64,000 bases of DNA from Selaginella moellendorffii (lineage: Eukaryota > Plantae > Lycopodiophyta), in contig NW_003314398.1 in NCBI RefSeq assembly GCF_000143415.4, positions 124,001 to 188,000 of the forward strand, written 5' to 3'. A program made the position numbers and the translations under genes. The notes beneath the pieces are model-generated. The model did no database searches and was not told the origin of the DNA. It was given only the letters and a program-made list of their open reading frames with translations. The first letter of the stretch is position 1. Every line of letters starts with the position of its first letter. Positions 1 to 38,655 of this stretch are shown piece by piece.

Positions 1-451
1 GGCTGGGAACCTGGTGTCCATACTCACCGGCGGTGCTATCCACGCTTTGCTGAGCTACTTACAGCCCGAGAGCTACACCTGGGACACCACCAAGAACATT
101 ACCATGGTGGAGGTCGACGACAAACCGGAGGTTTCGGAGGAGGAACTCAGCGAAGCGAAGCTGCAACACGCTCGAAAGTGGATCATTCGGTGGGGCGTGG
201 GGTTCACTCTGCTGATAGCAGTGCTGTGGCCCTTGGCGTCACTTCCGGCCAAGGAGTTTAGCTTGGAATACTTCACGTTCTGGGCCGTGATCGCCATCGT
301 GTGGGGGACCGTGGGCTCGGTGGTGATCATCCTGCTGCCGCTGGTGGAGAGCTGGGAGACGATCATGCTGGTACTCAAGGGGATGTTTACGTTTAACAGC
401 AGCCCGGTTGAGGCGAAGTCTCACCAGACTGGTGTGATCGCTGGACCCTGA
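1..451 (+). CDS. DUR3: Urea-proton symporter DUR3, 3' end (partial)
   Basis: AGNLVSILTGG...W.TTK.IT.VE...WIIRWGVGFTLLI.VLWPL.SLP...FS..YFTFWAVIAIVWG matches the plant DUR3 C-terminus; stop at 449-451. Confidence 0.9.
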   Translation, partial: AGNLVSILTGGAIHALLSYLQPESYTWDTTKNITMVEVDDKPEVSEEELSEAKLQHARKWIIRWGVGFTLLIAVLWPLASLPAKEFSLEYFTFWAVIAIVWGTVGSVVIILLPLVESWETIMLVLKGMFTFNSSPVEAKSHQTGVIAGP

Positions 452-985
452 TACGAAGGAAGAACAACACACCAAGTACGTAATTCTTTGTATGATTTTT
501 CATTTCTTTCCAGGAGAAGTTTGTGATTGAAGTTCAAGAATAAGCTCGCTCGGCACCAAGTACGTATATACTGTTTGTTTCATACTTGTTCTTAATGGGA
601 AAGCCACACTTTAATGAAAGCTTTCTTGAGCTCACAGCTTCCACGTACGTATAAAGTTGATGATGAAAGCTTTTCTGAGCTCACAGCTTCCAAGTACGTA
701 TCGTTTAGTTTTGCTTCTGTCGTCCATCTCGCAGGGGCTCCTCCATGGGACGGACGTTCTTCAGCTTCCCTGGGTTGAGCATGACGAGCACGTCCTTCGT
801 GGAGGGGCGGTCCTGTGGATTCAACTTGGTGCACAAGCAAGCGATTCGCATCGCCCGCTTCATCTCGGTTATCTCGTCCAGATTGGCAAATGCCGGGTTT
901 TGGCCGAGAGTATCATCGCCGCCACCTTCTTCCCCTCCTCGCGCTGCTGGCTTGAGCAGTGTCGGGTCGATCCCCTTGAGCTCCT
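351..985 (+). repeat. Direct duplication copy A (DUR3 tail, intergenic DNA, RLK 3' end); partner at 3406-4027
   Basis: Near-identical from 'gagacgatcatgctggt' to 'ccccttgagctcctg' in both places; contains an internal two-copy tandem of 'atgaaagctt...gagctcacagcttcca.gtacgtat'. Confidence 0.95.
705..985 (-). pseudogene. Orphaned 3' fragment of the SOBIR1-like kinase
   Basis: QELKGIDPTLLKPAAR...AMRIACLCTKLNPQDRPSTKDVL almost identical to the C-terminus of ORF 3760-5658. Confidence 0.9.
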
Positions 986-1253
986 GTGGATCGGTCGAAA
1001 GGCGCCAATGCCGTGGGCGAGACTCCGGAGTCTGGATCGCGGGTTTGACCCGGGAGAGGACTTTTGGACTATTGGAGCCACAGGAGAGGATTAAAAGACG
1101 CATCACCATCTCATCGTCGCCATACGGCGCCAAATGTGTCGTCCGGTTCGCCAGATGAGCGATCGAGAAAACTTTAGACCAGAATCGAGGCTGGAAACTC
1201 TGGTTCTAAAGCTCCCTTGAAAGTTCCAAATTTTCGTGTGTGAGTGGAAAGGG

Positions 1254-3284
1254 ATGGGAGCCATGGAGGAGAGCACCGTCGCCGACGCTAGCACTACCAA
1301 GGTGAGGAATTTCTCTTGGAAGAAATTAAGGAGAATGGAAGACACATTGGTGCTTTCGCCTTTGTAAGGATCTTGAAAATGGCGAAGATCTGGAGAAAGA
1401 GAGCTTCATCACAAAGGACGGCACTGTGGATTGGAAGAACAATCCTGCTGATAGGAGAACTACCGGCGGCTGGAAAGCGTGTCCTTATATCTTGGGTGAG
1501 CAACAAAAAAACGAAACTTTTTGATATCTTGCTTGATCTTGCCTTGAACAGGAAACGAATGCTGTGAGAGGCTTGCCTACTATGGAATGTCCATAAACTT
1601 GGTGGTGTTTCTGACCGACAAACTCCATCAGCACAACGCGACTGCATCGACCAATGTGACGAACTGGTCTGGAACTTGTGACATCACTCCTCTCATAGGA
1701 GCTTTCTTGGCCGATGCCTACCTCGGTCGCTACTGGACGATCGCTGCCTTCTCTTCTGTATACTTTGTGGTAAGTTCTTCTTTCTCGACTTTCATAGCTT
1801 CGCAGCTAAAAGTTCGTTTTTCTTACAGGGAATGGTTCTGCTCACGTTATCAGCGTCAGTTCCATCGTTAAAACCACCATCTTGTGTGGGGGACGTTTGT
1901 CCTGGGGCCTCGCCTGGTCAGATCGGATCATTCTATCTGGCTCTCTATCTGGTAGCGCTGGGCACTGGTGGAATCAAGCCTTGCGTTTCAACCTTTGGAG
2001 CAGACCAGTTTGACGACGAAGACCCCTCGGAGAAGAAGTATATGACTGTCTTCTTCAACTGGTTCTACTTCTCGATCAACGTCGGTGCCATGATCGCCAG
2101 CACCTTTCTCGTCTACATCCAGCAAAGCGTCAACTGGGCCTGGGGATTTGGCATACCGGCAGCAGCAATGGGAATAGCCATTGTGAGCTTCTTCATCGGG
2201 TCCAAGCAGTACAGGCACCAGAAACCAGGAGGAAGTCCGCTCACTCGGATCGCTCAAGTTATCGTCGCAGCCATCCGGAACTGGAGGCTACGTCTTCCAG
2301 CCGACGAGACCATGCTCTACGAGGTCGACGGGAAGGCGTCCGCCATCGAAGGGAGCCGAAAAATCCAGCACACAGCAGAATACAGGTGAAGTGCTCCTTA
2401 TATATTTTTGCGGGCTTCGCTTCGTTCTAAGTTCTTGTGACTTTCGGTTTGAAAGTTTCCTGGACAAGGCAGCGATCGAGGACAAGTCCAGACCGACGAC
2501 AAAGTGGAATCTTTGCACGGTCACTCAAGTCGAGGAAGTGAAGATCCTGCTACGAATCGTTCCTATCTGGGCCAGCGTCATCGTCTTCTCCACAGTCTAT
2601 GCTCAGATGTCGACGTTGTTCGTGGTGCAAGGCCTCAAGATGGACTACATCCTCGGCACCTTCAAGGTCCCGTCGGCATCGCTCTCCATGTTTGACCCGC
2701 TCAGCGTGTTGATCTTGGTCCCGATCTACGACCGCCTGCTCGTCCCCTTCGTCCGCAAGTACACCGGCCATCCACAGGGATTCACGCAGCTCCAGAGGAT
2801 GGGAATCGGTCTCGTCATCTCCACGATCTCCATGGTGGTGGCGGCGGTCCTGGAGATCCAGCGTCTGCGAGTCGCGAGGGAGAAAGGCCTGGTGGATGCC
2901 GACGACAAGAACTTCCCGAAGCTCCTCAACGCGCAGCTCAGCATCTTCTGGCAAATCCCCCAGTACTTCATCATCGGGGCGTCGGAGGTGTTCACCTTCA
3001 TCGGGCAGCTCGAGTTCTTCTACGAGCAGTCGCCCGACGCCATGCGGAGCTTGGGCTCGGCGCTGTCGCTGGCGACGGTGGCGCTCGGGAACTACCTCTC
3101 GAGCTTGCTGGTGACCATAGTCACCAAGATCACCCGGAGGGATGGGAAGCCCGGATGGATCGCCGACAACCTCAACCATGGCCACATTGACTACTTCTTT
3201 TGGCTCTTGGTAGCGCTCAGCGTCGTCAACTTTCTCTTCTATCTTCCATTCGCGTATCGCTTCAAGTATAAGGCGACTAAGTAA
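1254..3284 (+). CDS. NPF8: NPF8/PTR peptide transporter, derived copy; exons ~1254-1301, 1369-1495, 1552-1769, 1829-2385, 2456-3284
   Basis: [23 protein letters not shown] (ExxER), [48 protein letters not shown]; GT-AG introns of 56-70 nt. Confidence 0.95.
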
Positions 3285-3405
3285 AAGAAAAGCTTGACTG
3301 TGTACAGTAAAAGTCAAGCTTTAGTCAACGAGGGGAGTGTGATCTGGTCAAAGCCTCGGACGAGCCAACAAAAAATACTCATATTTTAAACGAGGACGGA
3401 GTGTC

Positions 3406-4027
3406 CTGGAGACGATCATGCTGGTGGGTGTTTACGTTTAACAGCAGCCCGGTTGAGACGAAGAAGTCTCGCCAGGCTGGTGTGATCGCCGGACCCTGAT
3501 ACGAAGGAAGACCAACACACCAAGTACGTAATTCTTGGTTTGATTTCTCATTGAGAAGTTTGTGATTGAAGTTCAAGAATAAGCTCGCTCGTCACCAAGT
3601 ACGTATATAATGTTTGTTTCATACTTGTTCTTAATGGGAAAGCCACACTTTAATGAAAGCTTTCTTGAGCTCACAGCTTCCACGTACGTATAAAGTTGAT
3701 GATGAAAAGCTTTCCTGAGCTCACAGCTTCCAAGTACGTATCGTTTAGTTTTTCTCCTCTCATCCATCTCGCAGGAGCTCCTCCATGGGACGGACGTTCT
3801 CCAGCTTCCCTGGGTTGAGCATGACGAGCACGTCCTTCGTGGAGGGGCGGTCCTGTGGATTCAACTTGGTGCACAAGCAAGCGATTCGCATCGCCCGCTT
3901 CATCTCGGTTATCTCGTCCAGATTCGCAAATGCCGGGTTTTGGCCGAGAGTATCATCGCCGCCACCTTCTTCTCCTGCTCGCGCTGCTGGCTTGAGCAGT
4001 GTCGGGTCGATCCCCTTGAGCTCCTGG
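3406..4027 (+). repeat. Direct duplication copy A' (partner 351-985)
   Basis: Begins with an orphan DUR3 tail and runs into the 3' end of the intact RLK. Confidence 0.95.
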
Positions 4028-5658
4028 CCGCTCTGGACGAGGTAGCACATCCACGGCACGATGCCGCCGGGGAAATCCTTGAAGAACTCGTCGGTGGGCT
4101 CGCGGCCGCTGATGAGCACGCCGAGGACGATGCCCATGCTGTAGACGTCGCTGCTCACGGTGAACTTGCATGTCTGGTGGTACTCGGGCGCGATGTACCC
4201 GATGGTGCCCGCCACCTGCGTCGTGACGTGCGTCATGCCGTCGGGCAGCGCCTTGGCCAGCCCGAAGTCGCCCAGGTGCGCCTCCAGCTCCTCGTCCAGC
4301 AAGATGTTGCTCGTCTTGAGGTCGCGGTGGAGAATCTTTGGGCTGCAATCGAAGTGGAGGTACTTAAGCCCGCGCACCATGCCGGTGGCGATCCGCTGCC
4401 GCGCGGACCACTCGAGCTCCATCGCGCCGTCGCGGACCCGGGCCAGCACGTCCTGGAGGCTACCGCGCGGCATGTACTGGTAGAGGAGGAGGTGGGCGTC
4501 GGGCTTGAGTATGTACGCGTAGAGCCACGCGAGGTTGACGTGGCGGATCTTGCCAAGTGTCTCCATCTCGGCGAGCGTGTGGCGCTTGCCGAAGCTGCCC
4601 TTGCCGCTGGATCGCGAGCCATCGGACGACGACGGCGGCTCGGGCGGCTGGATCGGGATTCGCTTGACCGCCACCTCCATGCCGCCCTCAAGCACGGCTT
4701 TGTAGACCTTGCCTGCGCCGCCGGCGCCCAGGAGGGGCATTTGCTGGAAGGACTCTGGGGAATCGAGGAAGGCGAGCATCTTGGGCGTGAGCTTGTGGAA
4801 GAAGATGATGGGACCGTTCTTGGCGCGCGCGCGCTTGTAGATGATGATCCCCGCGCGCGCGATGATGCCCACGAGCACGCCCGAGACCGAGCCGGCGAGC
4901 ACGCCCAGCGCCGCGCCGATGCCCCACCGCCGCGCCCTGCTGCGCCCCTTGTGCCGCGGGGGTGACCCTGCCGGGGCGGCGCTGGGCGATGGAGCTTCGC
5001 TGCCATTGGAGCTCGGAGGGGTCGGCGATTGCGATGGCGATGGAGCTGTAGCGCCGTCCTGGAGGAGCGCTCGCCGGGCACTGGAATAGTGCTTCTTCGT
5101 GGTGATGATCGAGGATGGAGGACACTCGCGATCTAAGGGCCAGCCACAGAGGCCGGGATTCCCAGCGAATGCCGCGGCGCTGCGCAGGGAATTCCCATTC
5201 CCATTCCCATTCCCAGTAGGGATCCGACCCACGAGGCGATTGCTGGAGAGATCGATGGAGCGGAGCTTGGGCAGCTGGGCAATCTCGTCCGGGATGAGGC
5301 CCGAGAGACGATTGCCGGACAGATCCAGCACGCGGAGCTCCGAGAGGAGCCCCAGCCGCGGGGAGAGCTCACCTTCCAGGAGAGATTTGGGCAGCCGGAT
5401 GGAGACGACGCGGAATCCCTGGCTGCCGTGGATCCACGAGCACTCCACGCCGCTCCAGGCGGTGCAAGCCTCCTCGTCGCGGCGCCAGGAGCGCAGCGCG
5501 CCGCTGGGGTCGTGGCGGATGTGGGTGGCGAAGGAGCGGAGAGCCGCGATGTCGGAGGTGTCCACGCTCGTCGCGAATTCCAATTCCTCTCCATGGCAGC
5601 CGCCCAAGAGGAGAAGAACCCATAAGCTGGAGAGGATGAGCGCCAGGAATCCCGCCAT
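3760..5658 (-). CDS. SOBIR1: Intronless LRR receptor-like kinase, SOBIR1/EVR-like
   Basis: Signal peptide, ~3 LRRs, GxxxGxxxGxxxG TM helix, kinase with LAKALPDGMTHVTTQVAGTIGYIAPEYHQT.KF and P.DEFF signatures typical of SOBIR1. Confidence 0.8.
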   Translation of the reverse strand: MAGFLALILSSLWVLLLLGGCHGEELEFATSVDTSDIAALRSFATHIRHDPSGALRSWRRDEEACTAWSGVECSWIHGSQGFRVVSIRLPKSLLEGELSPRLGLLSELRVLDLSGNRLSGLIPDEIAQLPKLRSIDLSSNRLVGRIPTGNGNGNGNSLRSAAAFAGNPGLCGWPLDRECPPSSIITTKKHYSSARRALLQDGATAPSPSQSPTPPSSNGSEAPSPSAAPAGSPPRHKGRSRARRWGIGAALGVLAGSVSGVLVGIIARAGIIIYKRARAKNGPIIFFHKLTPKMLAFLDSPESFQQMPLLGAGGAGKVYKAVLEGGMEVAVKRIPIQPPEPPSSSDGSRSSGKGSFGKRHTLAEMETLGKIRHVNLAWLYAYILKPDAHLLLYQYMPRGSLQDVLARVRDGAMELEWSARQRIATGMVRGLKYLHFDCSPKILHRDLKTSNILLDEELEAHLGDFGLAKALPDGMTHVTTQVAGTIGYIAPEYHQTCKFTVSSDVYSMGIVLGVLISGREPTDEFFKDFPGGIVPWMCYLVQSGQELKGIDPTLLKPAARAGEEGGGDDTLGQNPAFANLDEITEMKRAMRIACLCTKLNPQDRPSTKDVLVMLNPGKLENVRPMEELLRDG

Positions 5659-5929: not shown

Positions 5930-8597
5930 CTAAGACGTTAAGATAGGTGGCAAAACATCCGACTTCGCTCCCAGGATGTTGGCCTTGGTGTCCGGGAACT
6001 GCGATCGCCCCGGAAGCTCGCAAACCTCTCCAGTGGTCGTGATTCCAATCGGGTAGCTCAGCAAATGCCCGGGGAGATCCACCACCTCTTCGCCGGCAAA
6101 CATCGCCCAGTACTCGTCCGCGAGCTCGTTCACCTTCCTCACGCACTCCAAGCTCGAGGGGTGGAGGTACGCGTTGTCCAGCTTGCCGAGATGCTCGTAC
6201 CACAGCGACATCCGGAAGCCGTGGACGTCGCCGCGAGGAGCGTGGTGGTGACACGTGTGGAACGGCTGGTACGCTCCCATGGCGATCTCCGTGTCGCGGC
6301 CGCCGTCCATGGAGCGCTGGTTGATGTTGGCCGACCCGACGATGATGTACTCGTCGTCCACTGTTACGAGAAAGTCTAGTCAGTCAAGTGTACTAGAACA
6401 AAAACTATGACTATGGACTCGACCGTGAAAGTTTGAGCGTGGAAAGAAAACGAAAAGGCTGGAAGACTTACCGATCATCATCTTGGAGTGAACGTAGATC
6501 ATGAACCTCCTGTGCTCCTGTGCTGCCTTGTAGTTCGTTGCCTCCTCCTCGATGGCCTCCGGCGGGACGTAGTCGCCGTCTTGCGGGGTCTCTCGGTTTC
6601 CCAGGCAGAAGAAAGTGAGGTAGTCCTTTGGACTCTCGTCGGTGATCCCCTTGGCGTCCAAAGCCTGCGCAATCGACCTGTACATCATGTCCAGCGTCTT
6701 CTTCTGCCAGTCGAGGATGGCGAGCACCTGTCCACTCTCGGGGAGTCCCTCAGGCCACATTGGAACCACCACGTAGATGACGAACCGCTCGCCCTGCTCG
6801 ATCTTGTTGACGACTTTGAGAGCCAGCTCTCTGGCGATCAAGTGGTACGCACCGGCGTCGGTGTCAGTGTCCCACGCAAACGAGCTCCCAAGGAAGTACT
6901 GGTTCTCGATGTAGATGAAGTCCTTTGCTCGCCGGATGGCATGAATGTAGGCGTCCTGGATGCTGCGGTCGATGGTGCTGTCTTTGCCGCTCACAAGCCC
7001 AGCCTTGGCCGCGAGCTCTGGATCCTCGGGGAAGTTTGCCGCGGCACCACCGTCGATAGACCGGAACAGCTGAACGTTCCATGTCGAGGGATCGTCCCGG
7101 AAAGTCACCTCGGCCGGGGGCTCGATGTCGCTGACTTCTCTTATTGGCAGCAGCAAGTCCTTCTCGTCCGCCTGCTTCAGCCACCGCTGCTCGAAGTTGT
7201 GGAGGACGTCCCAGGCAACCGGCCCCTCGAGCTTGGAATGGATGTCATGCCACGGCTCTCTCGGCCCTCCCTTCTTGATGCTCGCGGTCTGGAAATTTGG
7301 CTGGTGGAAGTCGTCACCATGGTAGGAATCGAGCGTCCGGAAGAGCGAGTGGTACTGGTTGTCGTAGCGTCCATCGCAGAGGTCGATCCCTCCCACGAAG
7401 CTGACAATTCTTCGCTGCTGCGAATCACCCTGAGCTCCCGGGAGAGGAGAATCGACAATGATGGTCTTCTGGTGGTGAGTGAACATGGTGCCGATCTGGA
7501 ACTCTTGCACCACGCTCAAGCCGTCGTCTGGATTGCGCGGACACAGCAAGCACTTGACCTGCGTGCCCCTGAAGTAGTCGAGAGTTTCCTGGTCGTGAGT
7601 TGCCATGAGCCCGTCCATCCTGACGATGGGAATCGACGTCCTGTCGTCCCACACCAGCATGAGCACACGAACTCCCTCCTCGGCTTTCCTCTTGAGAAGC
7701 TCGCCGAGAGTGACGCCAGAGCTGCCGGGGATTTGCCTCTCGGGATCTCGGATGAGCTTGATCTCGGTGTAGACGGACCAGCCGGTGATATAGATGAGGT
7801 GCTTGGCATTGGTGAGAGCTTCAAAGACGTCCTCCCAGCACCTGGTCTCGGCATGCTTCCCACCACCCGCGAGCTTGATATCGGGCAGGAAGTTCTCGGT
7901 CATATGAGCGTCCTGGTAGAGTGTCACCTTGCATCCCTTCCGCTGCTGGCAGTACGTGAAAGGCACACCCTGGAACTTCCTTCCATCGCAAAGTCCTCGG
8001 CCAAAGCGAGGATCGTTGGTGGCCTCGTGGAACTGGAGCTTGATCCGGACCTTGGAGTCGCCACGCTTCTCACCGTTGTCGTCGTAGAGATCATACCAGT
8101 TCTCCACAGTCTCGCCGCTGAGGAGCTCCGAGACCTCGATGCTAGCTCGGCCCAGGAGCACCGCCCCGATGGCCTTGTCGTCCTTGATGGTCACCACCAC
8201 CTTGGAAACATTGTGTGCGCAGTAAATGTGGAAGCTCTCGTTCCATGACTCGCCCTTTCCAATCATGCGCGTCCGGCCCACGCGAGTCTTCTCCAGATCG
8301 ACCGTGGCATAGAACTTGTGTGAGCCATCGCCAGTGATTCCTCCGATAATCTGGAGCAAGGGAAAAAAAAGGATGATCAATAGCGCAAGAACTCCAAAGA
8401 AATGTGCCAAAGAAGAAGAAATCTTGGACAAGATTTGGGATCTGGCTAGGCCTAGATCACGGCCGCAGAAAATTGGCTCTAGATCGATCGAGATAGCACA
8501 CCTTATTGAAGAAACCCCCGGCGCTGTGATCGTGCTCCAGGTCCGAGGCCTCGTAGATCGTGGCATGGAGGGTTCCATGGAGGAGAATGAACGCCAT
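5930..8597 (-). CDS. PLDalpha: Phospholipase D alpha; exons 8597-8502, 8350-6472, 6360-5930
   Basis: [17 protein letters not shown]-terminus, C2 domain, two HKD motifs (HHQKTIIVD; HSKMMIVDD), [13 protein letters not shown]-terminal LPPILTS. Confidence 0.95.
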
Positions 8598-20772: not shown

Positions 20773-20946
20773 TGTGAGTGCATGGAATATGGAAAGAGAA
20801 TACAGAAATGTGCATATCAATTAGCTCAAAAACCCTAGCTTATATACAAGAGCGAGTGGTCCGGATTGAAACCAATCCGACGGCTACCAAAATCCACTAC
20901 GCTAATATTAGTATACGGCATCGTAGCCGTACACTTGGCCCTCACA
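20773..20946 (-). repeat. 3' LTR of element 1
   Basis: Matches 25609-25782; preceded on the minus strand by PPT GAGAGGAGGGGATGA (20947-20961). Confidence 0.95.
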
Positions 20947-20978
20947 TCATCCCCTCCTCTCGGAATAATGGAAGGCCG

Positions 20979-23900
20979 TCAGGGTTCTCTTGTCGATGGG
21001 CCGGGATCTGGAGGAACGTCAGGAGGAGGCATCGGTGGATCTGTAGACAGTATTAACTGCTCCTGATCCCTTTGTATGAAGCGTTTTAACCGCTGCACAT
21101 GCACAATCTTCGGAGGATCGGCCTGCTGAACGTCATGCCGAACCTCATAAACTTGTGGTCCAACTTGCCGCAACACCCGATACGGTCCTTTCCACTGCGC
21201 AAGGAGCCCCTTAGATAAACCACGTACCGTAAGATGGGGAAAACGGACTAACACCAAATCATCCATTTTGTACTCCGCAGGTGGACAATGATGGGAATTG
21301 TAGCGCCGTTGTTGTCCCACTTGTACGCGGCCTAAGTGTTCAGCAGACTCTGCTCGGACAAGTGGAAGAATGCTTGTCAAATATTGATCCCATGACCTAA
21401 CATCAGGAGCTCGTGGCAATCGCGAAGGTAAACCCAGCTCTGTTGGTAATATTGGATCATGACCATATAGAAGTTTATATGGTGAAGCACCAACAGAACT
21501 CTGCACCCCTGTGACATAAGCATACCGAAGAGACGGCAAATAACCATCCCAATCCGAATGTTGAAAGTTCACATACTTCGCAATCATCCCTTTGAATGTC
21601 CGAACGAGCTGTTCCACCAGACCGTCTGATTGTGGATGATAAGCACTCGTAAAAGTGTGGCGTATCCCCAACCGAGATGTCAAAACATGAAATACCTCAG
21701 CCATAAATGCAGGACCATTATCCGAAAGAATCCGCTCTGGACAAGAATGCTGGAATACCACTCGATTGAGGAGGAAGTATCCAACAGCAGTTGCAGAGGC
21801 ACTAGCAAGAGCACCAACTTCCACCCAACGAGTCAAGTAGTCAGAAGCAATAATAACATACTCATTGCTAGCAGTCGATCGCGGAAAAGGTCCCATAAGA
21901 TCAAACGCCACCAACTCAAATGGACGAGAAACTGCAATTGACTCCAACCGTCCTTCCGCAGCACAAGGGGGAGTATTACGAGCTTGGCACCAAACGCAGC
22001 TACGCACATACCGGATAATATCACGTCGCATCTTTGGCCAATAGAAAAATCTGCGCAGCTTCTCGGTGACACGACGGTGTCCCATATGCCCACTTAGAAT
22101 AGGAGAATCATGGTAGGCATGGAGAAACCGCGGAATAAACACCGAAGGCACCACCAGCCGTAAATGATCATCAGGATCCGTCCCCACAAAATAAAGAAGG
22201 TCATCTTCAAGGCGATATTGAGAATGTAAATGCCGAAAAGGCAAGTCATCAGCAAGTGATGCAGGATTCTCAAACCCATCTCGAAGCCTTCGAATCCACG
22301 ACTCAATCTTTTGAGCCTCGCGAACCTCATCCAGAGAAGGTAGATCTTGCTCTACGCCCTGTGGACACTGAACGTCAAGGACAGCAACCGCCGACGGCAC
22401 AGAATCCTCATCTAGAAAATCCACAGATGCTGGAACAACAGGTTCGTCAGAAACATGAGAAGTGAATGGAGAAGGAAGAGGAGCTCGAGAAAGGGCATCA
22501 GCATCAGCCATAGAACTCCCTGGGCGATGAACAACATTGAAATCATATATCTGAAGCTTCAAAGCCCATCGAGCCGTACGACCAACCAGGTTCTTCCGCT
22601 TCAATAATGAAGTAACAGCAGCATGGTCACCTTCAAGTAACGTCCGAGAACCATGTAAATATGCATGAAGTTTCTCGAAACCCCAGACTGCTGCTAAACA
22701 CTCCTTCTCCGTCGTGGAGTAGTTCATCTCCGCTGGTTGTAATGTACGGCTTATATATGCAATGGGATGGCATTGACCAGGCACACTCGAGCTCTCTTGC
22801 ATCAACACACCTCCAAGACCAATGTCAGAAGCATTCACGCGCAAAATAAAAGGTCGAGTGTAATCAGGATATGCCAAAACCGGAGGAGTCGTCAATAGCT
22901 CTTTGAGATTCACGAACGCCCGCTCACAATCGGGAGACCAGATGAAAGATGACGTTGATGACTTCAGCAACGCTCGCAATGGTGTAGTGAGATCGGAAAG
23001 ATGATCCACAAAACGACCGAGATACTGCACCTTACCCAAAAAGCGTTGCACATCATTCACACACTTCGGAGTAGGGAACTTTAGAACAGCCACAAGTTTG
23101 TCAGGATCAACTTGCAAACCCTCACGAGAAATACGGTACCCAAGATAAGTTGTGTCCTTGGACCCAAACACGCACTTCGACCGCTTCAGCTTTAAACCAA
23201 CATCGCGTAGCCGATCCAACACTTTACAAACATCACGAACATGCTCCTCCCACGTCCCCTCCGAGTGGATCAAGACATCATCAATGAAGTCAGCCGTCAC
23301 CTCCGGCATATCGCAAAGAACCTCGTCCATCATCCGCTGAAAAGTTGCTGGAGCATTGTTCAAACCAAACGGCATCACCAAAAACTCGTACAAACCAAAT
23401 GGTGTACGAAAAGCAGTCTTAGGAATATCTTCTTTAGCCAACGGTACTTGCCAATACCCAGAAGCAAGATCTAGCTTGGTGAACCAACGACTTCGCCCCA
23501 GACGATCCAAGAGATCAGCAGTGTGAGGAAGAAGGTACACGTCCGGGATCGTCACTTCATTTAACGGACGATAGTCGATGCAGAAACGAATACTCCCATC
23601 AGGCTTCGTCACAAGATGAGGTTCACATGCCCAAGGACTCCGCGACTTCCGAATAACACCCTTCTCCAACATCTCCTTGACGTTTGCACGTAAAATCTTG
23701 ATCTCCTTGGGTGACCGACGACGAACAGGAACCTTGATTGGACGAGCATCCCTAGTTGGAATGGGATGACGTGTGGCAATCTTGGCCCCAGACGATAGGT
23801 CAAATTCAAAGAGATCAGAATACTCCTTCATGAGCTGGTCAACAGCTGCAACACAAAGATCATCAGAGGGATCGGAAAAGGGAAGAGTAGAACAAGATGG

Positions 23901-24467
23901 AAACACAAGAGGAAATAGTGGGGGAACAAAAGTAATGGAAGCAGAGGTAGAAGTAGAGGGACGAAGAGGTACGGAAGTGAGAGGAATGGATGAAACATAA
24001 GGAAGTATAAGACAAGGGGGAGAAGCCTCAAAGTCACACTTGGCATGATTGTGCTGCAACCAATCCATACCAAGAATGAGGTCAAAAGCTTGACTCGGCA
24101 CCACCCGCAACGACTGCAACTCAAGCTCCAGATCGCCCACACGCACAACCAGGTCCGCCTCATCTCGTGCACATGCATGTGTACGGCCGTTGCCATAAAG
24201 AATGAAAACTGGATCCGCCGCACGATGCAAGTGTAGATGACAACGTGTGGCAACAGGTTGAGCAATAGAAAATAAACTCGAACCTGTATCAACCAACACG
24301 GAGAGAAGAATAGGAGACCTCTTGTTATAAAAACGAGCTTGGAAAGTAAACACTGGATGAACCGGTGCCGAGTGAACCCCTTGATGATACTCCCGAAAGA
24401 AAGATGGAGGGGTCACTAACTTATTCGCGCAAGGTCCCTCCATTACTCGTGCGACTCCTCGTTTCCC
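20979..24467 (-). CDS. pol: Pol polyprotein (PR, RT, RNase H, integrase), reached by -1 frameshift
   Basis: LVDTGS, RFCIDYR, KTAFRTP.GLYEF.VMPFGL.NAPATFQR, FIDD, H-H-C-C zinc finger, DDE core, WKGPY. Confidence 0.93.
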   Translation of the reverse strand, partial: GKRGVARVMEGPCANKLVTPPSFFREYHQGVHSAPVHPVFTFQARFYNKRSPILLSVLVDTGSSLFSIAQPVATRCHLHLHRAADPVFILYGNGRTHACARDEADLVVRVGDLELELQSLRVVPSQAFDLILGMDWLQHNHAKCDFEASPPCLILPYVSSIPLTSVPLRPSTSTSASITFVPPLFPLVFPSCSTLPFSDPSDDLCVAAVDQLMKEYSDLFEFDLSSGAKIATRHPIPTRDARPIKVPVRRRSPKEIKILRANVKEMLEKGVIRKSRSPWACEPHLVTKPDGSIRFCIDYRPLNEVTIPDVYLLPHTADLLDRLGRSRWFTKLDLASGYWQVPLAKEDIPKTAFRTPFGLYEFLVMPFGLNNAPATFQRMMDEVLCDMPEVTADFIDDVLIHSEGTWEEHVRDVCKVLDRLRDVGLKLKRSKCVFGSKDTTYLGYRISREGLQVDPDKLVAVLKFPTPKCVNDVQRFLGKVQYLGRFVDHLSDLTTPLRALLKSSTSSFIWSPDCERAFVNLKELLTTPPVLAYPDYTRPFILRVNASDIGLGGVLMQESSSVPGQCHPIAYISRTLQPAEMNYSTTEKECLAAVWGFEKLHAYLHGSRTLLEGDHAAVTSLLKRKNLVGRTARWALKLQIYDFNVVHRPGSSMADADALSRAPLPSPFTSHVSDEPVVPASVDFLDEDSVPSAVAVLDVQCPQGVEQDLPSLDEVREAQKIESWIRRLRDGFENPASLADDLPFRHLHSQYRLEDDLLYFVGTDPDDHLRLVVPSVFIPRFLHAYHDSPILSGHMGHRRVTEKLRRFFYWPKMRRDIIRYVRSCVWCQARNTPPCAAEGRLESIAVSRPFELVAFDLMGPFPRSTASNEYVIIASDYLTRWVEVGALASASATAVGYFLLNRVVFQHSCPERILSDNGPAFMAEVFHVLTSRLGIRHTFTSAYHPQSDGLVEQLVRTFKGMIAKYVNFQHSDWDGYLPSLRYAYVTGVQSSVGASPYKLLYGHDPILPTELGLPSRLPRAPDVRSWDQYLTSILPLVRAESAEHLGRVQVGQQRRYNSHHCPPAEYKMDDLVLVRFPHLTVRGLSKGLLAQWKGPYRVLRQVGPQVYEVRHDVQQADPPKIVHVQRLKRFIQRDQEQLILSTDPPMPPPDVPPDPGPSTREP
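24404..24467 (-). other. -1 ribosomal frameshift signal: slippery G GGA AAC plus predicted H-type pseudoknot
   Basis: Heptamer in the gag frame at 24467-24461; the -1 frame is the pol ORF; stems UCGCACGAG/CUUGCGCGA and AUGGAGGG/CCCUCCAU. Confidence 0.8.
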
Positions 24468-25375
24468 GAATGCACCTCGGTATCCAAACCTTCCACCGCA
24501 GCAGCACCAACGGGATGTTGCTGACGCCAAGGTCTCCACCCAGGAAATGGAGGTCGCCAATCCGGAAAGCGCCGACAACGCTGATAAGTATGACCAACTT
24601 CATCACATGCCCAGCAACGAAGGTCACGGCCACGACCACGTCCTCGCCCTTGTCCTTGGACTCGAGTAGCAGCAGCATCAACCTCCATGGGAACAGGACC
24701 ATCACTCATAGGAAGTGGAGTTGAAGGACGTGTAGCAAGAAGTGGAAGAGGCGACGTCTCATAACGTTGTGCCAAGCGAAGAGCATCGTCAAGAGTGGCA
24801 GGAGCAAGTGCATGCACAAGTCCGACAAGATCTTGACGAAGTGCTGGCCACAGCATTCCTAGCTTGATCCGCTCCGACATATTTGGCTCCGCACGAAGCA
24901 AAAGACTTCGGAAACGAACACCAAATTGCATCACTGACTCAGATGGCCCTTGGCGAAGACGATGCAATTGTTGGAAGGCATCATCACAATCGTCGGCGTG
25001 TCCGAAGGCGCGTTTGAAGACGTCCGGAAGAACACTCCAATCGCCACGAGTAGCTGCGCTCAATCCATTGTACCACTGCAATGCCGTCCCCTGGAGACAT
25101 GTGGGGAACTCACGCAAACGTCGAGCATCATCCCAAGAATGATATGTGGCAATCACCGTGAAGTGATCGAACCAATGGTACACATCATCCCCAGGATTCC
25201 CATGAAAGAACTCCGGCCGAACGCGAGGATTGGCACCAAAAGCAAGAGGAGTTGTACCATGTGCCGTGAATGCCGCCATCAACTGAGTTTGGTTGTTCAA
25301 TTGCAAGCGCATAGCATCAAGCAATTGAACCAACTGTTGCTCTAGAGTCAAAGGAGGAGATTGCGGATCGGCCAT
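24443..25375 (-). CDS. gag: Gag (310 aa)
   Basis: Retrotransposon gag core (QGPSESV..F..RF) and CCHC knuckle CWACDEVGHTYQRC. Confidence 0.93.
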   Translation of the reverse strand: MADPQSPPLTLEQQLVQLLDAMRLQLNNQTQLMAAFTAHGTTPLAFGANPRVRPEFFHGNPGDDVYHWFDHFTVIATYHSWDDARRLREFPTCLQGTALQWYNGLSAATRGDWSVLPDVFKRAFGHADDCDDAFQQLHRLRQGPSESVMQFGVRFRSLLLRAEPNMSERIKLGMLWPALRQDLVGLVHALAPATLDDALRLAQRYETSPLPLLATRPSTPLPMSDGPVPMEVDAAATRVQGQGRGRGRGRDLRCWACDEVGHTYQRCRRFPDWRPPFPGWRPWRQQHPVGAAAVEGLDTEVHSGNEESHE

Positions 25376-25589
25376 GAAAATGAATGAAAAAGAAAGAGCA
25401 AAAGAAGAGAAATGACAAAAAGCTGGAAAGAAATGGTAGATCTAGACAATGCAAAAAGCTAGATCTAAACCAAAATCCTGAAAGGAAAGAACAAAAGAAA
25501 GGAAATGGAAAAAGCTAGATCTAGACAATGCAAAAGCTAAATTTAAACCGAAATCCCAAATCCAAGCACTCCCCAGGGACAATCAAAGG

Positions 25590-25607
25590 TGCCCCTCATC
25601 TCCACCA
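25590..25607 (-). other. Primer-binding site, tRNA-Ala type
   Basis: TGGTGGAGATGAGGGG is complementary to the plant tRNA-Ala 3' end (...CCCCGCATCTCCACCA) with one mismatch, 1 nt from the LTR. Confidence 0.75.
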
Positions 25608-25608
25608 A

Positions 25609-25782
25609 TGTGAGTGCATGGAATATGGAAAGGGAATATAGAAATGTGCATATCAATTAGCTCAAAAACCCTAGCTTATATACAGGAGCGAGTGGTCCGG
25701 ATTGAAACCAATCCGACGGCTACCAAAATCCACTACGCTAATATTAGTATACGGCATCGTAGCCGTACACTTGGCCCTCACA
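25609..25782 (-). repeat. 5' LTR of element 1
   Basis: Matches 20773-20946. Confidence 0.95.
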
Positions 25783-25952
25783 TATTGATATTAAAAAATA
25801 AAAATGTTACTTTATTAAAATTAATATAAAAATTACTCAAAGCAAAAAAACATGCAAATCAAAATTAAAAATTAAAGTAAGTTCATATTTATATTATTTT
25901 TACTTTATTTAGATAAAATTAAAATAAAAATTAATAATCTTTAAAAACTAGT

Positions 25953-28900
25953 TATGAGGTCAAGTGTACAACTATGATACTATATACTAATATTAGTATA
26001 GTGGGATTTTGGTAGCCGTCAGATTGATTTTAATCTGAACTACTCGGTTTTGTATATAAACTAGGGTTTTTAGGCTAATTGATATGCACATTTTCTGTAA
26101 TTTTTTTTTTTTTCATATTCCATGTATTTACATAGAAGCAGCTTTGATTATCCTTAAAGAGTGTTGATATATAACTCCTTTTACTCTTGCTACCAATCCT
26201 CGCATCTAACTGGGGTTTTTTCGTGGGAATCTTGGGGATGATGTGTACTATTGGTTTGATCACTTCATGGTGATTGCCACATATCATTTTTGGGATGATG
26301 CTTAATGTTTGTTTGAATTTCCCATGTGTCTCAATGGGATGGCATTGTAGTGGTACAATGGTTTAAGTGCAACCATTCGTGAGGATTGGAGTATTCTCCC
26401 GAACATCTTCAAACTTATATTTGGATATATTGACAATTGTGATGATGCTTTTTAACAATTGCATTGTCTTTGTTAAGGGTCATTTGAGTTGGTAATGCAA
26501 TTTAGCGTTTATTTTTTAAGCCTCTTGCTTCGTGTGAAGCCAAATATGTCGGAGTGAATTAAGTTGGGAATGTTATGGCCAACACTTCATCAAGACCTAA
26601 TAAGACTTATATATACACTTACTCTAGCCATCCTTAACAATGCCCTTTGTTTGGCACAACGTTGTGAGATATCACTTCTTTCACTTTTCACTACACATCA
26701 TTTAACTCCACTTTCTATGGGAGATAGTTCTGTTCTAATAAAGGTTGATATTGCTATTGCTCATATTTAAGGACTAGAATAAGAATATAGTTGTGGCCGT
26801 GATGTCTACTACTAGGCATATAATGAAGTTGGTCACATTTATAAGTGTTGTTGGCATTTTTCGAATTAATAACCTCCATTTCCTGAGGGGAGACTTTGGC
26901 GTCAACAACATTCTATTTGTGTTGTTGCAGTGAAAGGTTTAGACATCGAGATGCATCTAGGAAACAAGGAATTGCATGAGTAACAAAAAGACTTTGTGTG
27001 AATAAGTTAGTGACCCCTCCATCTTTCTGTCAAGAGTATCATCAAGGGGTTCACTTGGCATCAATTTATCCAATGTTTACTTTCCAAGCTTGTTTTTATA
27101 ACAAGAGGTCTATTATTCTCTCTGTGTTGGTTAATACAAATTTAAGTTTATCTTTTATTGCTCAGCTTATTGCTATACATTGTTGTTTACATTTATGTTA
27201 TGCGGTAGAGCTAATTTTTATTCTTTATGGCAACAGTTGTACACACACATATATATAGAATAAATACTTAGTTGTGCGTGTGGGCAATCTTGAGCTTAAG
27301 TTGTAATCATTGCAGGTGGTGATGAATCAAGTTTTTGACCTCATCTTTGGTATAAATTGGTTGTGGTACAATCATGCCAAATATGACTTTGAGGTTTCTC
27401 CCCCTTATCTCATATTTCTTTATATTTCTTCCATTCCTCTCACTTCTATACTTTTTCGTCCCTTTACTTTTACTTTTGCTTCCATCACTTTTGTTTCCCT
27501 ATTGCTTCTTTCTATATTTTTGTTTTATTCCTCTCTTCCCTCTTTCAATCCCTCTGATGGTTTTTATATTGGAGCGGTTGACCAAGTTATGATAGAGTAT
27601 GTTGATCTCTTTGAATTTGACCTGTCGTCTAGGGCTAAGATTACTACACATCATTTTATTTTAATTATAGATGCTCATCCAATCAAGGTTCTAATTCATC
27701 ATCAATCACCCAAAGAACAAGATTTTACATTCAAATATCAAGCAGATATTGGAAAAGGGTGTTATTCAAAAGTTGGGCATGTGAACCTCTTCTTGTAATG
27801 AAACTTGATGGGAATATTCGTTTTTGCATCAATTATTGTTCATTAAACAAAGTGACGATCCCAGATATATACCTTCTTCCTCACACTATTGATCTATTAG
27901 ATTATCTAGGGAGAAGTCATTGGTTCACCAAGTTAAATCTTGCTTTTGGGTACTAGCAAGTACTAATTGCCAAAGAAGATATTTCTAAGATTGTTTTTTT
28001 ACACTATTTAGTTTGTATTAGTTCTTAATGATGTTGTTTAGTTTGAATAATGCTCTAGTAATTTTCTAGCGGATAATGGACGAAATGTTTTGGATATGCT
28101 AAAGGTGATTGTTGACTTCATCGATGATGTCTTGATCCACTCGAAAGGGACGTGGGAAGAACACATCTGTGATGTTCGCAAGGTGTTAGATTAACTACAA
28201 AAAGTTGATATAAAGATAAAGTAGTCGAAGTCTGTATTTGGGTCCAAGGATATGATTTATCTTGGATACCATATTTTTTCTAAAGGTTTGCAACTTGATT
28301 TTGAAAAATTTGTGGCTATTCTAAAGTACCTTACTCCAAATTGTATGAATGATGTGTAATACTTTTTAGGAAAGGTGCAATATCTCAATTATTTTGTTGA
28401 TCATCTTTTTAATGATCCATAAGATGTTGGATCAGCTATGGAAAGTTGGTTTTAAGTTAAAGTGGTCGAAGTGTATGTTTGGGTCCCAAGGACACAACTT
28501 ATCTTGGGTATCATATTTCTCGTAAGGGTTTGCAAGTTAATTCCTACAAATTTGTGGCTATTTTAAAGTTCTATATTCCAAAGTGTGTGAATAATGTACA
28601 ACAATTTTTGTGCAAGGTGTAGTATTTTGATTGTTTTTGTTAATCATCTTTCTACGACATGATGTTATCTAATATATGCATATCTGCATTTGGTGCCAAG
28701 CTTGTAATACTCCTCTTCGTGCTACGAAAGAACGGAGTCAATTGTAATTTCCCATTTGTTTGAGTTGGTGGTTTTTGATTTGATGGGACTTTTTTTACGA
28801 TCAACTACTAGCTATGACTATATCATTATTGTTTTTGACTTCTTAACTCACTGGGTGGAAGTCAATACTCTTGCTTACACATCTACAATTGTTGTTAAAT

Positions 28901-29886
28901 ACTTCTTTCTCAATCGAGTGGTGTTCCAGCATTCCTGTCTAGAGTTGATTCTTTTGGATAATAATTCCCCATTTATGGTTGAGGCATTTTACGTTTATCT
29001 CAGTTGGGGATATGCCACACTTTCACAAGTGCTTATCATCCATAGTCAGATGGTTTGGTAGAATAGCTCGTTTGGACCTTCAACAGGATGATTGTGAAGT
29101 ATATGAACTTTCAACGTTTGGATTGAGATGGTTATTTGTTGTCTCTTCCATATACATATGTCACAGAAGTGTAGAGTTCTATTGGTGCTTCATCATATAA
29201 ACTTCTATATAGTCATAATCCAATACTACCAACGGAGTTAGGTTTACCTTTGTGATTGCCGTGGGTTGCCAATGCTAAGTTGTGGGATCAATATTTAATA
29301 AGCATTCTTCCACTTGTCCGAGCAGAGTTTGTTAAACACCTGGGCTACATACAAGTGGGACAATAATAATACTACAACTCCCATCATTGTCCACCTCAGG
29401 AGTACAAAGTGGATGACTTGGTGTTAATCCATTTTCCCCATATTATAATACATAGTTTATCTAAGGGGCTCTTTGCTCAGTAGAAAGGACCGTATCGAGT
29501 GTTGTGGCAAGTTGGACTGCAAGTTTATGAGGTTTGGCATAGCATTCAACAGACTGATCCTCTAAAAATTTTGTATATGTAATGACTAAAATGCTTCATA
29601 GAAAGGGATCAGGAACAATTGGCACGATCTATAAATCCATTGATACCTCCTCCTGATGTTCCTCTAGATCCTAGTCCATCCACGAGAGAACTTTGATGAT
29701 CTTCTATTATTCTGAGAGGAGGGGATGACGTGAGGTCCAAGTGTACAACTATGATGTTGTATACTAATATTAGCGTAGTGGGATTTTAGTAGCCGTTGAA
29801 TTGGTTTCAATCTGAACCACTTGTTATTATATACTAATTGATATCCACATTTTCTATATTCTCTTTTTATATTCCATACACTCACA
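25953..29886 (+). mobile_element. Degenerate second copy of the same gypsy family (LTRs 25953-26132 and 29729-29886; TSD TAGT)
   Basis: Colinear with element 1; PBS and gag start deleted, RT segment duplicated (~28170-28410 / 28420-28655), RNase H deleted, many stops. Confidence 0.93.
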
Positions 29887-29956
29887 TAGTGAATATAAAA
29901 AATAATCGAAATAAAATAAATTTAAAATAATGACTGAAAATATTTTTATTTAAATA

Positions 29957-32900
29957 TATAAATGTATAGAATATGGTAGGAAATACAGAAATGTGCATAT
30001 CAATTAGCCCAAAAACCCTAGCTTATACACAGGATGGAGTGGTCCAGATTAAAACTAATCCAACAGTTACCAAAATCCCATTATGCTAATATTAATATAC
30101 CACATCATAGCTATACATTTAGACCTCACATCATCCCCTCCTCTTGGAATGATAGAAGATAATAAAGATTCATTTGTGGATGAGCTGGGATTTGGAGGAG
30201 CATTAGAAGATGGCATCAGTGGATTTGTAGTGGTGTCAATTGTTCTTCATTCTTTTGTATAAAGCGTTTCAACTATTGCACATGCATAATTTCCAAAGGA
30301 TTGGCTTATTGGACATTATGCCAAACCTCATAAAGTTGTGATTCAACCTGTCATAACAACCAATACTAAGCAAGGAACCCCTTAGACAAACCACATACCG
30401 TAAGATTGGGAAAATAAATTAACACTAAGTCATCCAGTTTGTACTCCACAGGTGGATAATGATGGGAGTTGTAGCGCTGTTGTTGTCCCGCATGTTTAGC
30501 AAACTTTGTTTAGATAAGTGGAAAAATGTTCATCAAATACTAATCCTAAGACTTAACATCGGTAGTTTGTAGCAATCGCAAATGCAAACTCAATTTTGTT
30601 GGTAATATTGGATCATGACCATATAGGAGTTTATATAGTGAAGCACTAACAAAACTTTGCACCGTTTATATAGTGAAGCACCAACAAAACTTTGCACCCT
30701 ATGACATATGCATACTGAAAAGATGGCATATAACCATCCCAATTTAAATGTTGAAAGTTCATATACTTCTCAATCATCCCTTTGAAGGTCCGAACAAGTC
30801 ATTCCAACAAACCATTTGACTGTGGATGATAAACACTTATGAAAGTGTTGCATATCCCCACCTAAAATGTTAAAATACGAAATGTCTCAGCCATAATTGT
30901 AGGATTACTATTTGAAAGAATTAGCTTTAGACAAGATTGTTGAAACACCATTGAATTGAGGAGGAAGTATCTAATAATAATTGTAGACACACTAGCAAGA
31001 TCACCAATTTCCACCTAGTGAGTCAAGTAATCAAAAGCAATAATGACATATTCATTATTAATAGTCAACCGTTTATCAAATCAAATGCTATTAACTCAAA
31101 TAGATGGGAAAATGCAATTAACTCCAACCATTCTTTCGCAACACGAAGGGGAATATTATGAACTTGGCACCAAACACAACTATGCATATACTAAATAATA
31201 TCATGTTATATCTCAAACTAATAAAAAGAATTGCATAGCTTTTCAGTTACATAACGATGTCTTATATACTCATATAGAATAGAACAATCATAGTAGGCAT
31301 GGAAAAAATGTGAAATAAAGATTGATGGCACCACCAACCATAAATGATCATTAAAATTCATCTCCACAAAATAAAGAAGATCATCGTCAAGATGATATCA
31401 AAAATATAAATGCCAAAATGGCAAGTCATCATCAACTGATGTAGAATTCTCAAATCCGTTATGAAGTCTTTGGATCCACAGCCCAACCTTTTGATCCTCA
31501 TAAACCTTGTCAAAAGAAGATAAATCTTGCTTTACACCTTGTGGACATTAAATATCAAGTACAACAACTACTAACAGCACGAAATCCTTGTTACAAAATC
31601 CATAAATGCTAAAATAATAAGCTTGTCAGAAACATGAGAAGAGAGCGAAGAAAGAAAAGAATTTCAAAAAAGGGCATCAATATTAACCATAGAACTCTTT
31701 ATGCAATGAACAATATCAAAATTATATATCTGAAGTTTCAAAGCCTACCGAATAGTACGACCAACTAAATTCTTCAACTTTAATAATGAAGTAAGTGTAG
31801 AATAATCACCTTCTTGTAATGTTTGAGAACTATGTAGATATGCATGAAGTTCTTGAAACTTCAAACTATTACTAAACACTCATTTTCTATTGTGGAGTAG
31901 TTCACCTTTGCTAATTGTAATATATAGATGATATATACAATAAGATGGTGCTGACCAAGGACACTTGGGCTCTTTTGCATCAATATACCTCTAAGATCGA
32001 TATCAGAAGCATCCATGTGCAAAATGAAAAGTCAAGTGTAGTCAAGATATGGCAAAATTAGAGGAGTTGTCAATATCTCTTTAAGATCTATAAATACCTG
32101 CTCACAATCTGCAAGTGAAATGAAAGATGATGTTGATAACTTCAGCAATACTCGCAATGGTGTACTGCAATCAGAAAGATGATCAACAAGACACTCAAAA
32201 TATTGCACCTTACCTAGGAAGTGTTGCACATCATTCACACACTTTGAGTGGGGAATTTCAGAGTAGCCACAAGTTTGTCTGGATCAACTTGTAAACCCTC
32301 ATAAGAAATATGGTACCCAAGATAAATCATGTCTTAAACATGCATTTTGACTATTTCAATTTTAAACCAACTTCTCATAGGTGATCCAACACTTTATGAA
32401 TATCACAAACATGTTCCTCTCACATCCCCTTCGAGTGGATCAAAATATCATTGATGAAGTCTAAAACTTACTAAATATGAAATAATGCTAGATTGCAAAT
32501 TTGGGTATGGGACAAACACTTTTGTGTTTAATACAATCTCTACATTCTGTAGATATGCCAAATTAGCAAATCTAGATACTTTCCATAAAACCAAATAGAA
32601 CCAACATGTAAGCTATCATCTACCCATATTAAGGGACTAGTCTCAATACACAGGGGTTCTTGTCAAGCTAGTGCAAGATAGAACAAAAAAGAACTAAGAG
32701 CCAGACCGAATATGCTCAGTAAGAAACACATAAGAGTTTTTACATTATGTTCATTTGACTAAATATAAATGTTAAGCCTAGTTTGTTAACACTTGATCAA
32801 GAGGGGCTAAAAAAAATTCAGCAATACCAACCTCCTATCGTCGTGGCAATAAAGAAAGAATATTTAAAAGGATTTGCTGACAAATAACTTTTAATACCTG

Positions 32901-33770
32901 TAATCACATTCATGATAAGAAGTGTCAAAGTGTTTGGCATAATTATGCTACAATCAATCCATACTAAGGATGAGGTTAAAAGTTTAATTTAGCATTACTT
33001 GCAATGATTGTAACTCAAACTCAAAATTGCCCATATGCGCAACCAAGTTTGCTTTATCCCGTGCATATATATACGGTCATTGCTATAAAGAATGGAAACT
33101 GGCTCTACTGTATAATATAAATGTAAACAGCAACATGTGGCAATAAGTTAAACAATAGAAGATAAACTTAAGCTTGTATCAACCAATACGGAGAGAAGAA
33201 TAAAAGACTTCTTATTATAAAAATGAGTTTGGAAAGTAAACATTGGATGAACTAATACTGAGTGAACCACTTGATAATACTCTTAAAAGAAAGATGAAAG
33301 GGTTACTAACTTATTTGCACAAGGTCCCTCCATTTTTTGTATGACCCCTTGTTTCCCAAAAGTATTTCAGTGTTTAGACTTTTCACTGCAATAGCACTAA
33401 CAGGACACTATTGACGCTAAAGTCTCCACCTAGGAAATAGAGGTTACTAATATGGAAAACACTGACAACATTGATAAATGTGACCAACCTCATCACACAT
33501 CTAGTAACGGACATCACGGCCATAACCACATCCTCACTCGTGTTTTTGAACTCGGGCAGTAGTAGCATCAACCTCCATTGGACCAAAATTATCTCCCACA
33601 AAAAGTGGAGCTAAAAGATGTGCAATGAGAAGTGGAAAATACAATGTATTATAATGTTGTGCTAAACGAAGAGCATTATTAAGGGTTATTAGAGCAAGTG
33701 CATGTATAAGTCTTATAAGATCTTGACAAAGTCACAACATTCTCAACTTGATCCTTTTTGACATATTTTG
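29957..33770 (-). mobile_element. Degenerate third copy of the same gypsy family, 5'-truncated within gag (3' LTR 29957-30130)
   Basis: Colinear with INT, RH, RT and gag of element 1; unrelated DNA at ~32461-32925 replaces part of RT. Confidence 0.93.
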
Positions 33771-38598: not shown

Positions 38599-38655
38599 TT
38601 GACCGGATCCCCTCGTTGACTAAAGCTTGACTTTCACTTTACACAGTCAAGCTTT
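38599..38655. promoter_or_regulatory. W-box cluster and 11-bp inverted repeat between the NPF8 stop and the IQM start
   Basis: TTGACY at 38599, 38616, 38627 and 38645 (reverse); AAAGCTTGACT...AGTCAAGCTTT. Confidence 0.5.

Follow-up and report, generated by a model that had tools for sequence, protein, structure and literature searches.

How can a whole gene be inserted where two convergent genes lie 268 bp apart, and both of them survive? This question is raised by a locus at the start of a 64,000-nucleotide stretch of the genome of the lycophyte Selaginella moellendorffii (NCBI RefSeq assembly GCF_000143415.4, contig NW_003314398.1, positions 124,001 to 188,000 of the forward strand), which we call the window and to which all coordinates below refer. 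At this locus, the tail-to-tail ends of a DUR3 urea-proton symporter gene and of an LRR receptor-like kinase (RLK) gene are separated by a putative peptide-transporter gene of the NPF8 subfamily of the NRT1/PTR family, which is a copy of another NPF8 gene located 37.5 kb away on the same chromosome in the opposite orientation, and the tails of both neighbours are present twice. We propose that one DNA-level copy-and-paste event, proceeding through break repair or template switching, probably made this dispersed, inverted and functional NPF8 duplicate. The locus shows a whole gene entering the short interval with both neighbours spared, and the donor, the acceptor, both junctions, the rescued neighbours, their decaying spare tails and the new gene are all visible within the 64 kb.

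Self-BLAST and global alignments resolve the locus into four consecutive parts, with sharp ends of homology at every border. These are a left-hand copy of the target (A, 355-986, possibly starting at 352), an inverted copy of the NPF8 locus (B, 987-3401, + strand), a 5-nt filler, TGTCC (3402-3406), without match in the donor or the target, and a right copy of the target (A', 3407-4026). B is the reverse complement of 41010-38549; over 2388 aligned bases the two differ by 75 mismatches (3.1%) and by 10 indel events. A and A' are direct repeats of a 632-bp unit, in which 21 of 615 bases are mismatched (3.4%) and 4 indel events are seen. A sequence-only reading of this DNA had placed the inverted copy at 984-3400, against about 38552-41013, and had bracketed it with two direct copies of about 630 bp (351-985 and 3406-4027); self-BLAST bears out both elements of this layout and shifts their borders by a few nucleotides to those given above. 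A contains the 32 terminal codons of DUR3 and the 88 terminal codons of the RLK, with the 268-bp spacer that separates the two convergent stop codons between them, and both breakpoints therefore lie inside coding sequence. The reading frame of DUR3 continues into A and that of the RLK into A', the right-hand unit, in which the spacer lies between an orphan DUR3 tail and the RLK tail that is in use.

The donor locus (38549-41010, coding sequence 38704-40763, − strand) remains intact as the central gene in a cluster of three NPF8 genes (34363-36247, −; 38704-40763, −; 43137-45080, +) with 72-76% DNA identity, and it matches EFJ06381.1 at 100%. Because the donor sits within this tandem cluster, it is the source and 987-3401 is the derived copy. 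Besides the five exons and four introns, the copied segment includes 267 bp of flanking DNA on the 5' side and 117 bp on the 3' side. Its coding region (1254-3284, +) is an intact open reading frame (ORF) for 592 amino acids in exons 1254-1301, 1369-1495, 1552-1769, 1829-2385 and 2456-3284; these exons are 100% identical to XP_002992551.2, a protein of 592 amino acids that matches our five-exon model exactly. Relative to the parent, exon 1 of the copy carries a 21-bp in-frame deletion that removes 7 amino acids. The exons were searched singly and as separate profile rows, that is, exon by exon rather than as a joined spliced protein, and the PTR2/POT domain PF00854 was found in exon 4 (E 1e-55) and exon 5 (E 4e-63). 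The closest named relatives are NPF8.1, 8.2, 8.3 and Peptide transporter 1, and the RefSeq name is 'NRT1/PTR FAMILY 8.2'; this naming supports the putative label 'NPF8' that we use for the copy. At the 3' end of the parent (38655-38720), three tandem 22-bp units repeat the last codons and the stop codon, and a single unit is present in the copy.

The retention of all four introns excludes a spliced RNA intermediate; together with the lack of an A-run at either junction and the 632-bp length of the flank repeat, it argues against a LINE-mediated retrocopy. A related proposal is reverse transcription of, or RNA-templated repair from, an unspliced NPF8 pre-mRNA, and the extent of the cargo has some appeal for it, as B corresponds to about one transcription unit, reaching 267 bp beyond the ATG on the upstream side and 117 bp beyond the stop codon on the other, with an A-rich AAAAAATA stretch about 25 nt before its 3' border. 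However, the four introns were kept and no poly-A tract is found at the 3' junction, the 632-bp flank duplication far exceeds the target duplications of retroelements, and a putative TATA-like element inside B, some 140 bp before the ATG, suggests that B begins upstream of the transcription start. We consider a pre-mRNA template very improbable. The copying of a promoter together with all introns and the 3' flank, as had been claimed from the sequence, holds for the introns and the 3' flank, whereas for the promoter it is what the copied 5' flank suggests.

The borders of B also lack the marks of mobile DNA that were sought there. No terminal inverted repeats (TIRs), as expected for capture by a Pack-MULE, CACTA or hAT element, pair the borders at 987 and 3401, no long terminal repeats (LTRs), Helitron ends or poly-A are found at these borders, and the segment is not flanked by a short, fixed-length target-site duplication of 2-10 bp; the flanking repeat is 632 bp long, and none surrounds the donor. 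With regard to the Helitron pattern 5'-TC/3'-CTRR, B begins and ends as TGGATC.../...GGACGGAG on one strand and as CTCCGT.../...GATCCA on the other, and the host bases next to it differ from the A and T between which Helitrons insert. The lack of TIRs, LTRs and poly-A noted in the sequence-only reading thus stands at the borders of B, and the check for Helitron termini was negative as well.

Capture and movement by a mobile element, or by a nuclease encoded in one, was also considered; such an unrecognised transposon or nickase system would cut the two strands far apart and give target duplications of 0.6-3 kb. In its favour, a perfect 11-nt motif, CTCAAGGGGAT, occurs close to each end of A, once per strand, at 374-384 (+) and 970-980 (−), forming an inverted repeat 19 and 6 nt inside these ends; a comparable terminal 11-nt repeat was found in 40 of 63,368 random 632-bp segments of the window (about 6e-4, a post hoc figure). 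The motif also occurs in A' at 4010-4020, and the left arm in A' was removed by an 8-bp deletion. Against such a system, the motif is missing near the ends of the donor and its two distances from the breakpoints are unequal, B carries neither TIRs, nor LTRs, nor Helitron 5'-TC/3'-CTRR ends, the donor has no flanking target duplication, and the homology between donor and copy stops in ordinary unique sequence. An origin of this kind is unlikely. A role for the 11-nt motif as a nick signal in the event itself was likewise set aside in view of its absence near the donor ends, and the motif remains an unexplained coincidence.

The junctions themselves differ from each other. The A/B junction is blunt, with 0-2 nt of ambiguity, and the B/A' junction carries the 5-nt filler. 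The earlier description of 2-3 nt of microhomology at the junctions holds in that the junctions are of an end-joining type, but its figures have to be revised to 0-2 nt at one junction and the 5-nt filler at the other. Such junctions fit either end joining or template switching that is poor in microhomology. Several further similarities near the junctions were examined and discarded: the 7-nt CTCTGGA common to the start of the donor and the sequence 4-11 nt past the end of A' is compatible with chance, and neither an imperfect GGAG(G)ACGA at the other junction nor a 7-nt filler match inside B was judged significant, the chance expectation for such similarities being about 0.05 to 0.3.

Did the flank duplication and the insertion of the gene occur together? 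If a single event produced both, A and A' should have diverged as far as B and its donor, a comparison that the sequence-only reading had called for. Overall, A and A' differ at 21/615 positions (3.41%, 95% confidence interval 2.1-5.2), and B and its donor at 75/2388 (3.14%, 95% confidence interval 2.5-3.9); the two divergences are equal at this resolution (3.4% versus 3.1%, p 0.70, Fisher). By class, the A/A' divergence is 5/89 (5.6%) in the DUR3 tail, 10/259 (3.9%) in the spacer and 6/267 (2.25%) in the RLK tail, and that between B and its donor is 36/609 (5.9%) in non-coding sequence and 39/1779 (2.2%) in exons. When the spacer and DUR3 tail of A (4.3%) are set against the non-coding and synonymous sites of B (5.2%), p is 0.57; the comparisons of neutral-like classes gave p 0.25-0.57, and all like-with-like comparisons were non-significant, with p 0.14-0.70.

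A two-event history would have a 632-bp tandem duplication of the DUR3 and RLK tails arise first and an unrelated NPF8 insertion fall at its junction later. Such a history has precedent, as tandem duplications of 10-1000 bp are described as common natural insertions in plants (Vaughn and Bennetzen 2014, as summarised in PMC7407515); the divergence estimates have wide limits, and the flanks of B tend to exceed the neutral classes of A in divergence (7.0% versus 4.3%, p 0.14). However, the insert lies exactly at the A/A' boundary and neither copy was lost. By simple arithmetic, a later random insertion would fall within 5 bp of the boundary of a 1264-bp tandem A-A' in about 0.8% of cases, unless the junction was fragile. 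In addition, the overall divergences are equal, and a B that arrived later should look younger than the A/A' pair, not older. Two separate events are therefore improbable in our judgement, and the position of B exactly at the A/A' boundary together with the equal divergence makes a single event the economical reading.

The assembly contains both haplotypes of a heterozygous plant, the window belonging to a scaffold of 352,132 bp that has an allelic scaffold of 2,302,610 bp, and the second haplotype was compared through public proteins. On the allelic scaffold, the copy type is represented by the protein XP_002972318.2 and the parent type by XP_002972518.2. Among the 574 residues that can be compared, 16 differences between copy and parent are fixed on both haplotypes, alongside the 7-amino-acid deletion in exon 1, and no site groups the genes by haplotype. 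As a copy-type gene is present on both haplotype scaffolds, the duplication is real and an empty site in the other haplotype is not to be expected. The sequence-only reading had pointed to the other haplotype as a place to look for such a site; by protein comparison, the copy-type gene is present there instead. Accession-number adjacency, considered as a stand-in for the gene order of the second haplotype, was dropped as unreliable.

The presence of two haplotypes in one assembly is also what could favour an assembly artefact, that is, haplotype mixing or a chimeric join. Several observations argue against it. The four repeat units are at least 3% apart and differ by indels, so they are neither collapsed nor copied reads, and no N bases occur in the 64-kb window. 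The orphan RLK tail is not the other allele, from which it differs at 6/88 amino acids; the second haplotype scaffold independently has a copy-type gene with the same diagnostic states; and a mis-join would not yield a gene-sized inverted piece between direct repeats with reciprocal decay. An artefact is extremely improbable.

The same comparison places the duplication in time. The paralogues are separated by 19-26 amino acid differences, the two alleles of the copy by 10 and the two alleles of the parent by 2, from which the duplication is estimated to be about 3.75 times older than the haplotype split. Since no site groups the genes by haplotype, copy and parent have remained without gene conversion between them since that split. 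If a typical plant nuclear substitution rate applied, none being known to have been measured for Selaginella, the neutral divergence of 4-6% would amount to a few million years. The locus provides a dated and polarised pair for studying the early divergence of a transporter duplicate.

The claim of the sequence-only reading that a single DNA-level template-switch or repair event created the copy is supported by the retained introns, the retained donor, the lack of transposon marks, the end-joining junctions, the equal divergences and the position of B. That there was one event, that a polymerase copied the donor and which route was taken are the elements that we infer. In one route, a 3' DNA end in the tail-to-tail interval between DUR3 and the RLK would have stopped at position 986 and would then have switched to the opposite-strand template 37.5 kb away on the same chromosome. 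There, 2.4 kb would have been copied, comprising one whole gene and short flanks, after which the new end would have been rejoined to the original locus 632 bp behind its exit point. In the alternative route, two nicks on opposite strands, 632 bp apart, would have left a break whose long 5' overhangs were then filled in, while the copied NPF8 segment bridged the gap. Either route would duplicate the 632 bp with both gene tails, so that DUR3 would have its complete tail in A and the RLK its complete tail in A'. We regard replicative switching and staggered-break fill-in with filler synthesis as sub-models of one explanation, as the sequence fits both. A nearby inverted donor in cis is natural for template switching between converging forks, and the flank duplication is natural for offset nicks.

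Several observations weigh against a single repair-type event, and some of them against its proposed age. Besides the tendency of the B flanks already mentioned (7.0% versus 4.3%, p 0.14), the equal-age test has wide confidence limits, as the 615-bp pair contains only 21 differences, and non-coding divergence reaches 7.3% at both ends of B, compared with 2.7% in introns 2-4 (p 0.025); gene conversion or unequal ages of the two pairs may be responsible. The 3-6% of later change may have blurred the detail of the junctions, and the model leaves the 11-nt inverted repeat at the ends of A unexplained. No empty site with a single A has been seen, and the copy on the second haplotype is identified by its protein sequence. 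Finally, the RLK tail in A' is closer to that in A (3 amino acids) than to the tail on the other haplotype (5 amino acids), which is unexpected for a duplication much older than the haplotypes, unless conversion occurred.

Gene duplication by the repair of DNA breaks is an event type that is already known. In grasses, gene movement has been attributed to double-strand-break repair with 'filler DNA' made by synthesis-dependent strand annealing (Wicker, Buchmann and Keller 2010, as summarised in PMC3445842). As in those cases, a segment with a gene was copied in Selaginella to a site that is not collinear, no transposon ends are present, the donor was kept and the junctions are of an end-joining type. 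In contrast to them, the donor in Selaginella lies in cis, 37.5 kb away, the break occurred without a transposon insertion and the target was duplicated over 632 bp; moreover, the gene that moved in Selaginella is complete and under selection, instead of being a fragment or a pseudogene.

In rice, natural insertions form tandem or partly tandem duplications, some of them with ectopic donors, and have been explained by asymmetric nicks and end joining in 'patch-mediated' breaks (Vaughn and Bennetzen 2014, as summarised in PMC7407515). The Selaginella locus resembles them in having a direct target duplication around an insert copied from elsewhere, and offset nicks with fill-in would explain its flanks. 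However, the rice class as summarised there covers 10-1000 bp with donors often within 200 bp, whereas the Selaginella insert is a whole gene of 2.4 kb, inverted, from a donor at 37.5 kb.

Replicative template switching, described as fork stalling and template switching (FoSTeS) or microhomology-mediated break-induced replication (MMBIR), is known from complex rearrangements and insertions in humans (PMC5120786, PMC11293582). The likeness here lies in two proposed switches, an inverted templated segment, a duplication behind the exit point, little microhomology and small insertions at the junctions. The human cases are usually tens of kilobases to megabases in size and pathogenic, whereas the Selaginella event was gene-sized, became fixed and left a working gene. 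Capture by Pack-MULEs, Helitrons or other transposons likewise places a host gene, copied as DNA together with its introns, at another site, but the Selaginella copy lacks TIRs, 5'-TC/3'-CTRR ends and a short target duplication of fixed length, and it is a complete gene rather than a set of fragments. Compared with the grass, rice and human classes, with which it belongs, the locus is distinctive in its 632-bp flank, its whole gene of 2.4 kb, its working product and the sparing of two neighbours 268 bp apart.

Selaginella is a lineage without whole-genome duplication (PMC5750206), and its new genes must therefore arise by local or segmental copying. The locus may exemplify a recurrent pathway, perhaps typical of Selaginella, in which single genes are copied into a packed genome by way of distant nicks on opposite strands, with the neighbours rebuilt by fill-in and a template the size of a gene copied into the gap. 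The nicks of such a pathway would lie hundreds to thousands of base pairs apart, perhaps guided by a signal such as the 11-nt motif. We consider this extension doubtful at present. If true, dispersed gene duplication would have a separate route that spares the neighbours, in a lineage without whole-genome duplication.

What has become of the new gene? Between copy and parent, dN/dS is 0.39 (p 0.006) with dS 0.042, Ka/Ks having been summed over exons and split codons skipped. Indels tell a similar story, as the 1779 exon bases contain 1 event and the 609 non-coding bases contain 8 (p 1e-4), and the ORF of the copy is intact on both haplotypes. Judged from these patterns, the copy is under purifying selection and is maintained as a working gene. 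It has nevertheless accumulated 10 amino acid changes since the haplotype split, versus 2 in the parent (p 0.039), and 16 versus 4 when all polarised changes are counted (p 0.012). The copy thus evolves faster than its parent, through relaxed constraint or a new function, both of which fit the data.

The neighbours were described in the sequence-only reading as both intact, each leaving an orphan fragment. For the RLK, intactness is seen directly, as the gene is a complete single-exon ORF of 632 amino acids (3760-5658, −) with the Pfam domains Pkinase, LRR and LRRNT_2 and with its last 88 codons in A'; DUR3 is visible in the window as its last exon only (14-451, +; stop codon 449-451), an ORF for the C-terminal 145 amino acids that was identified with phmmer. 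Against solved structures, phmmer matched this exon to the DUR3 chains 9vim_A, 9j7c_A and 9x5u_A at E 1e-43, and searches of Pfam, NCBIfam and the protein atlas gave no name to the DUR3 tail. The RLK is 100% identical to residues 1-632 of XP_024521995.1, and its nearest distinct public relative is the allelic S. moellendorffii 'CORYNE'-like protein XP_024532973.1 (97.5%).

The orphan fragments were found for both neighbours, each with a disabling change. In A', the orphan DUR3 tail (3407-3499, +) carries an 8-bp deletion that shifts its frame. In A, the orphan RLK tail (705-986, −) has 88 codons, with 3 amino acid changes relative to the working tail, and its stop codon is lost (TGA to CGA), which prolongs the frame by 5 codons. 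The spare tails are thus decaying reciprocally, that of DUR3 in A' and that of the RLK in A. The difference of 6/88 amino acids from the RLK tail of the other haplotype indicates that the orphan tail is not a misplaced allele. Compared with XP_024532973.1, the amino acid differences of the RLK between haplotypes are concentrated in the duplicated tail (3763-4026, −), with 5/88 there versus 9/542 elsewhere (p 0.034), and this clustering may result from gene conversion by an orphan tail on the other haplotype. Polarisation of these RLK-tail differences with an outgroup was unsuccessful, the variable sites lying within a Selaginella-specific insertion.

Adjoining the RLK is a phospholipase D gene with C2 and PLDc domains (5930-8578, −). 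Elsewhere in the window, an AT-skewed block (20773-33732) contains direct and inverted repeats of 75-80%, including two 175-bp direct repeats (20773-20947 and 25609-25783) at 98.3%.

The locus also accounts for two chimeric RefSeq gene models. XP_002992575.2 (1540 amino acids; 34366-40626, −) fuses the parent NPF8 gene, the ORFs downstream of it and the neighbouring NPF8 paralogue. XP_024521995.1 (1166 amino acids; 708-5658, −) combines the RLK with ORFs antisense to NPF8 and the orphan RLK tail; beyond the RLK, its pieces are the antisense ORFs 3495-3391, 3308-2556 and 2281-2006 and the orphan tail at 1205-708. This second chimera is probably an annotation artefact of the duplicated tail.

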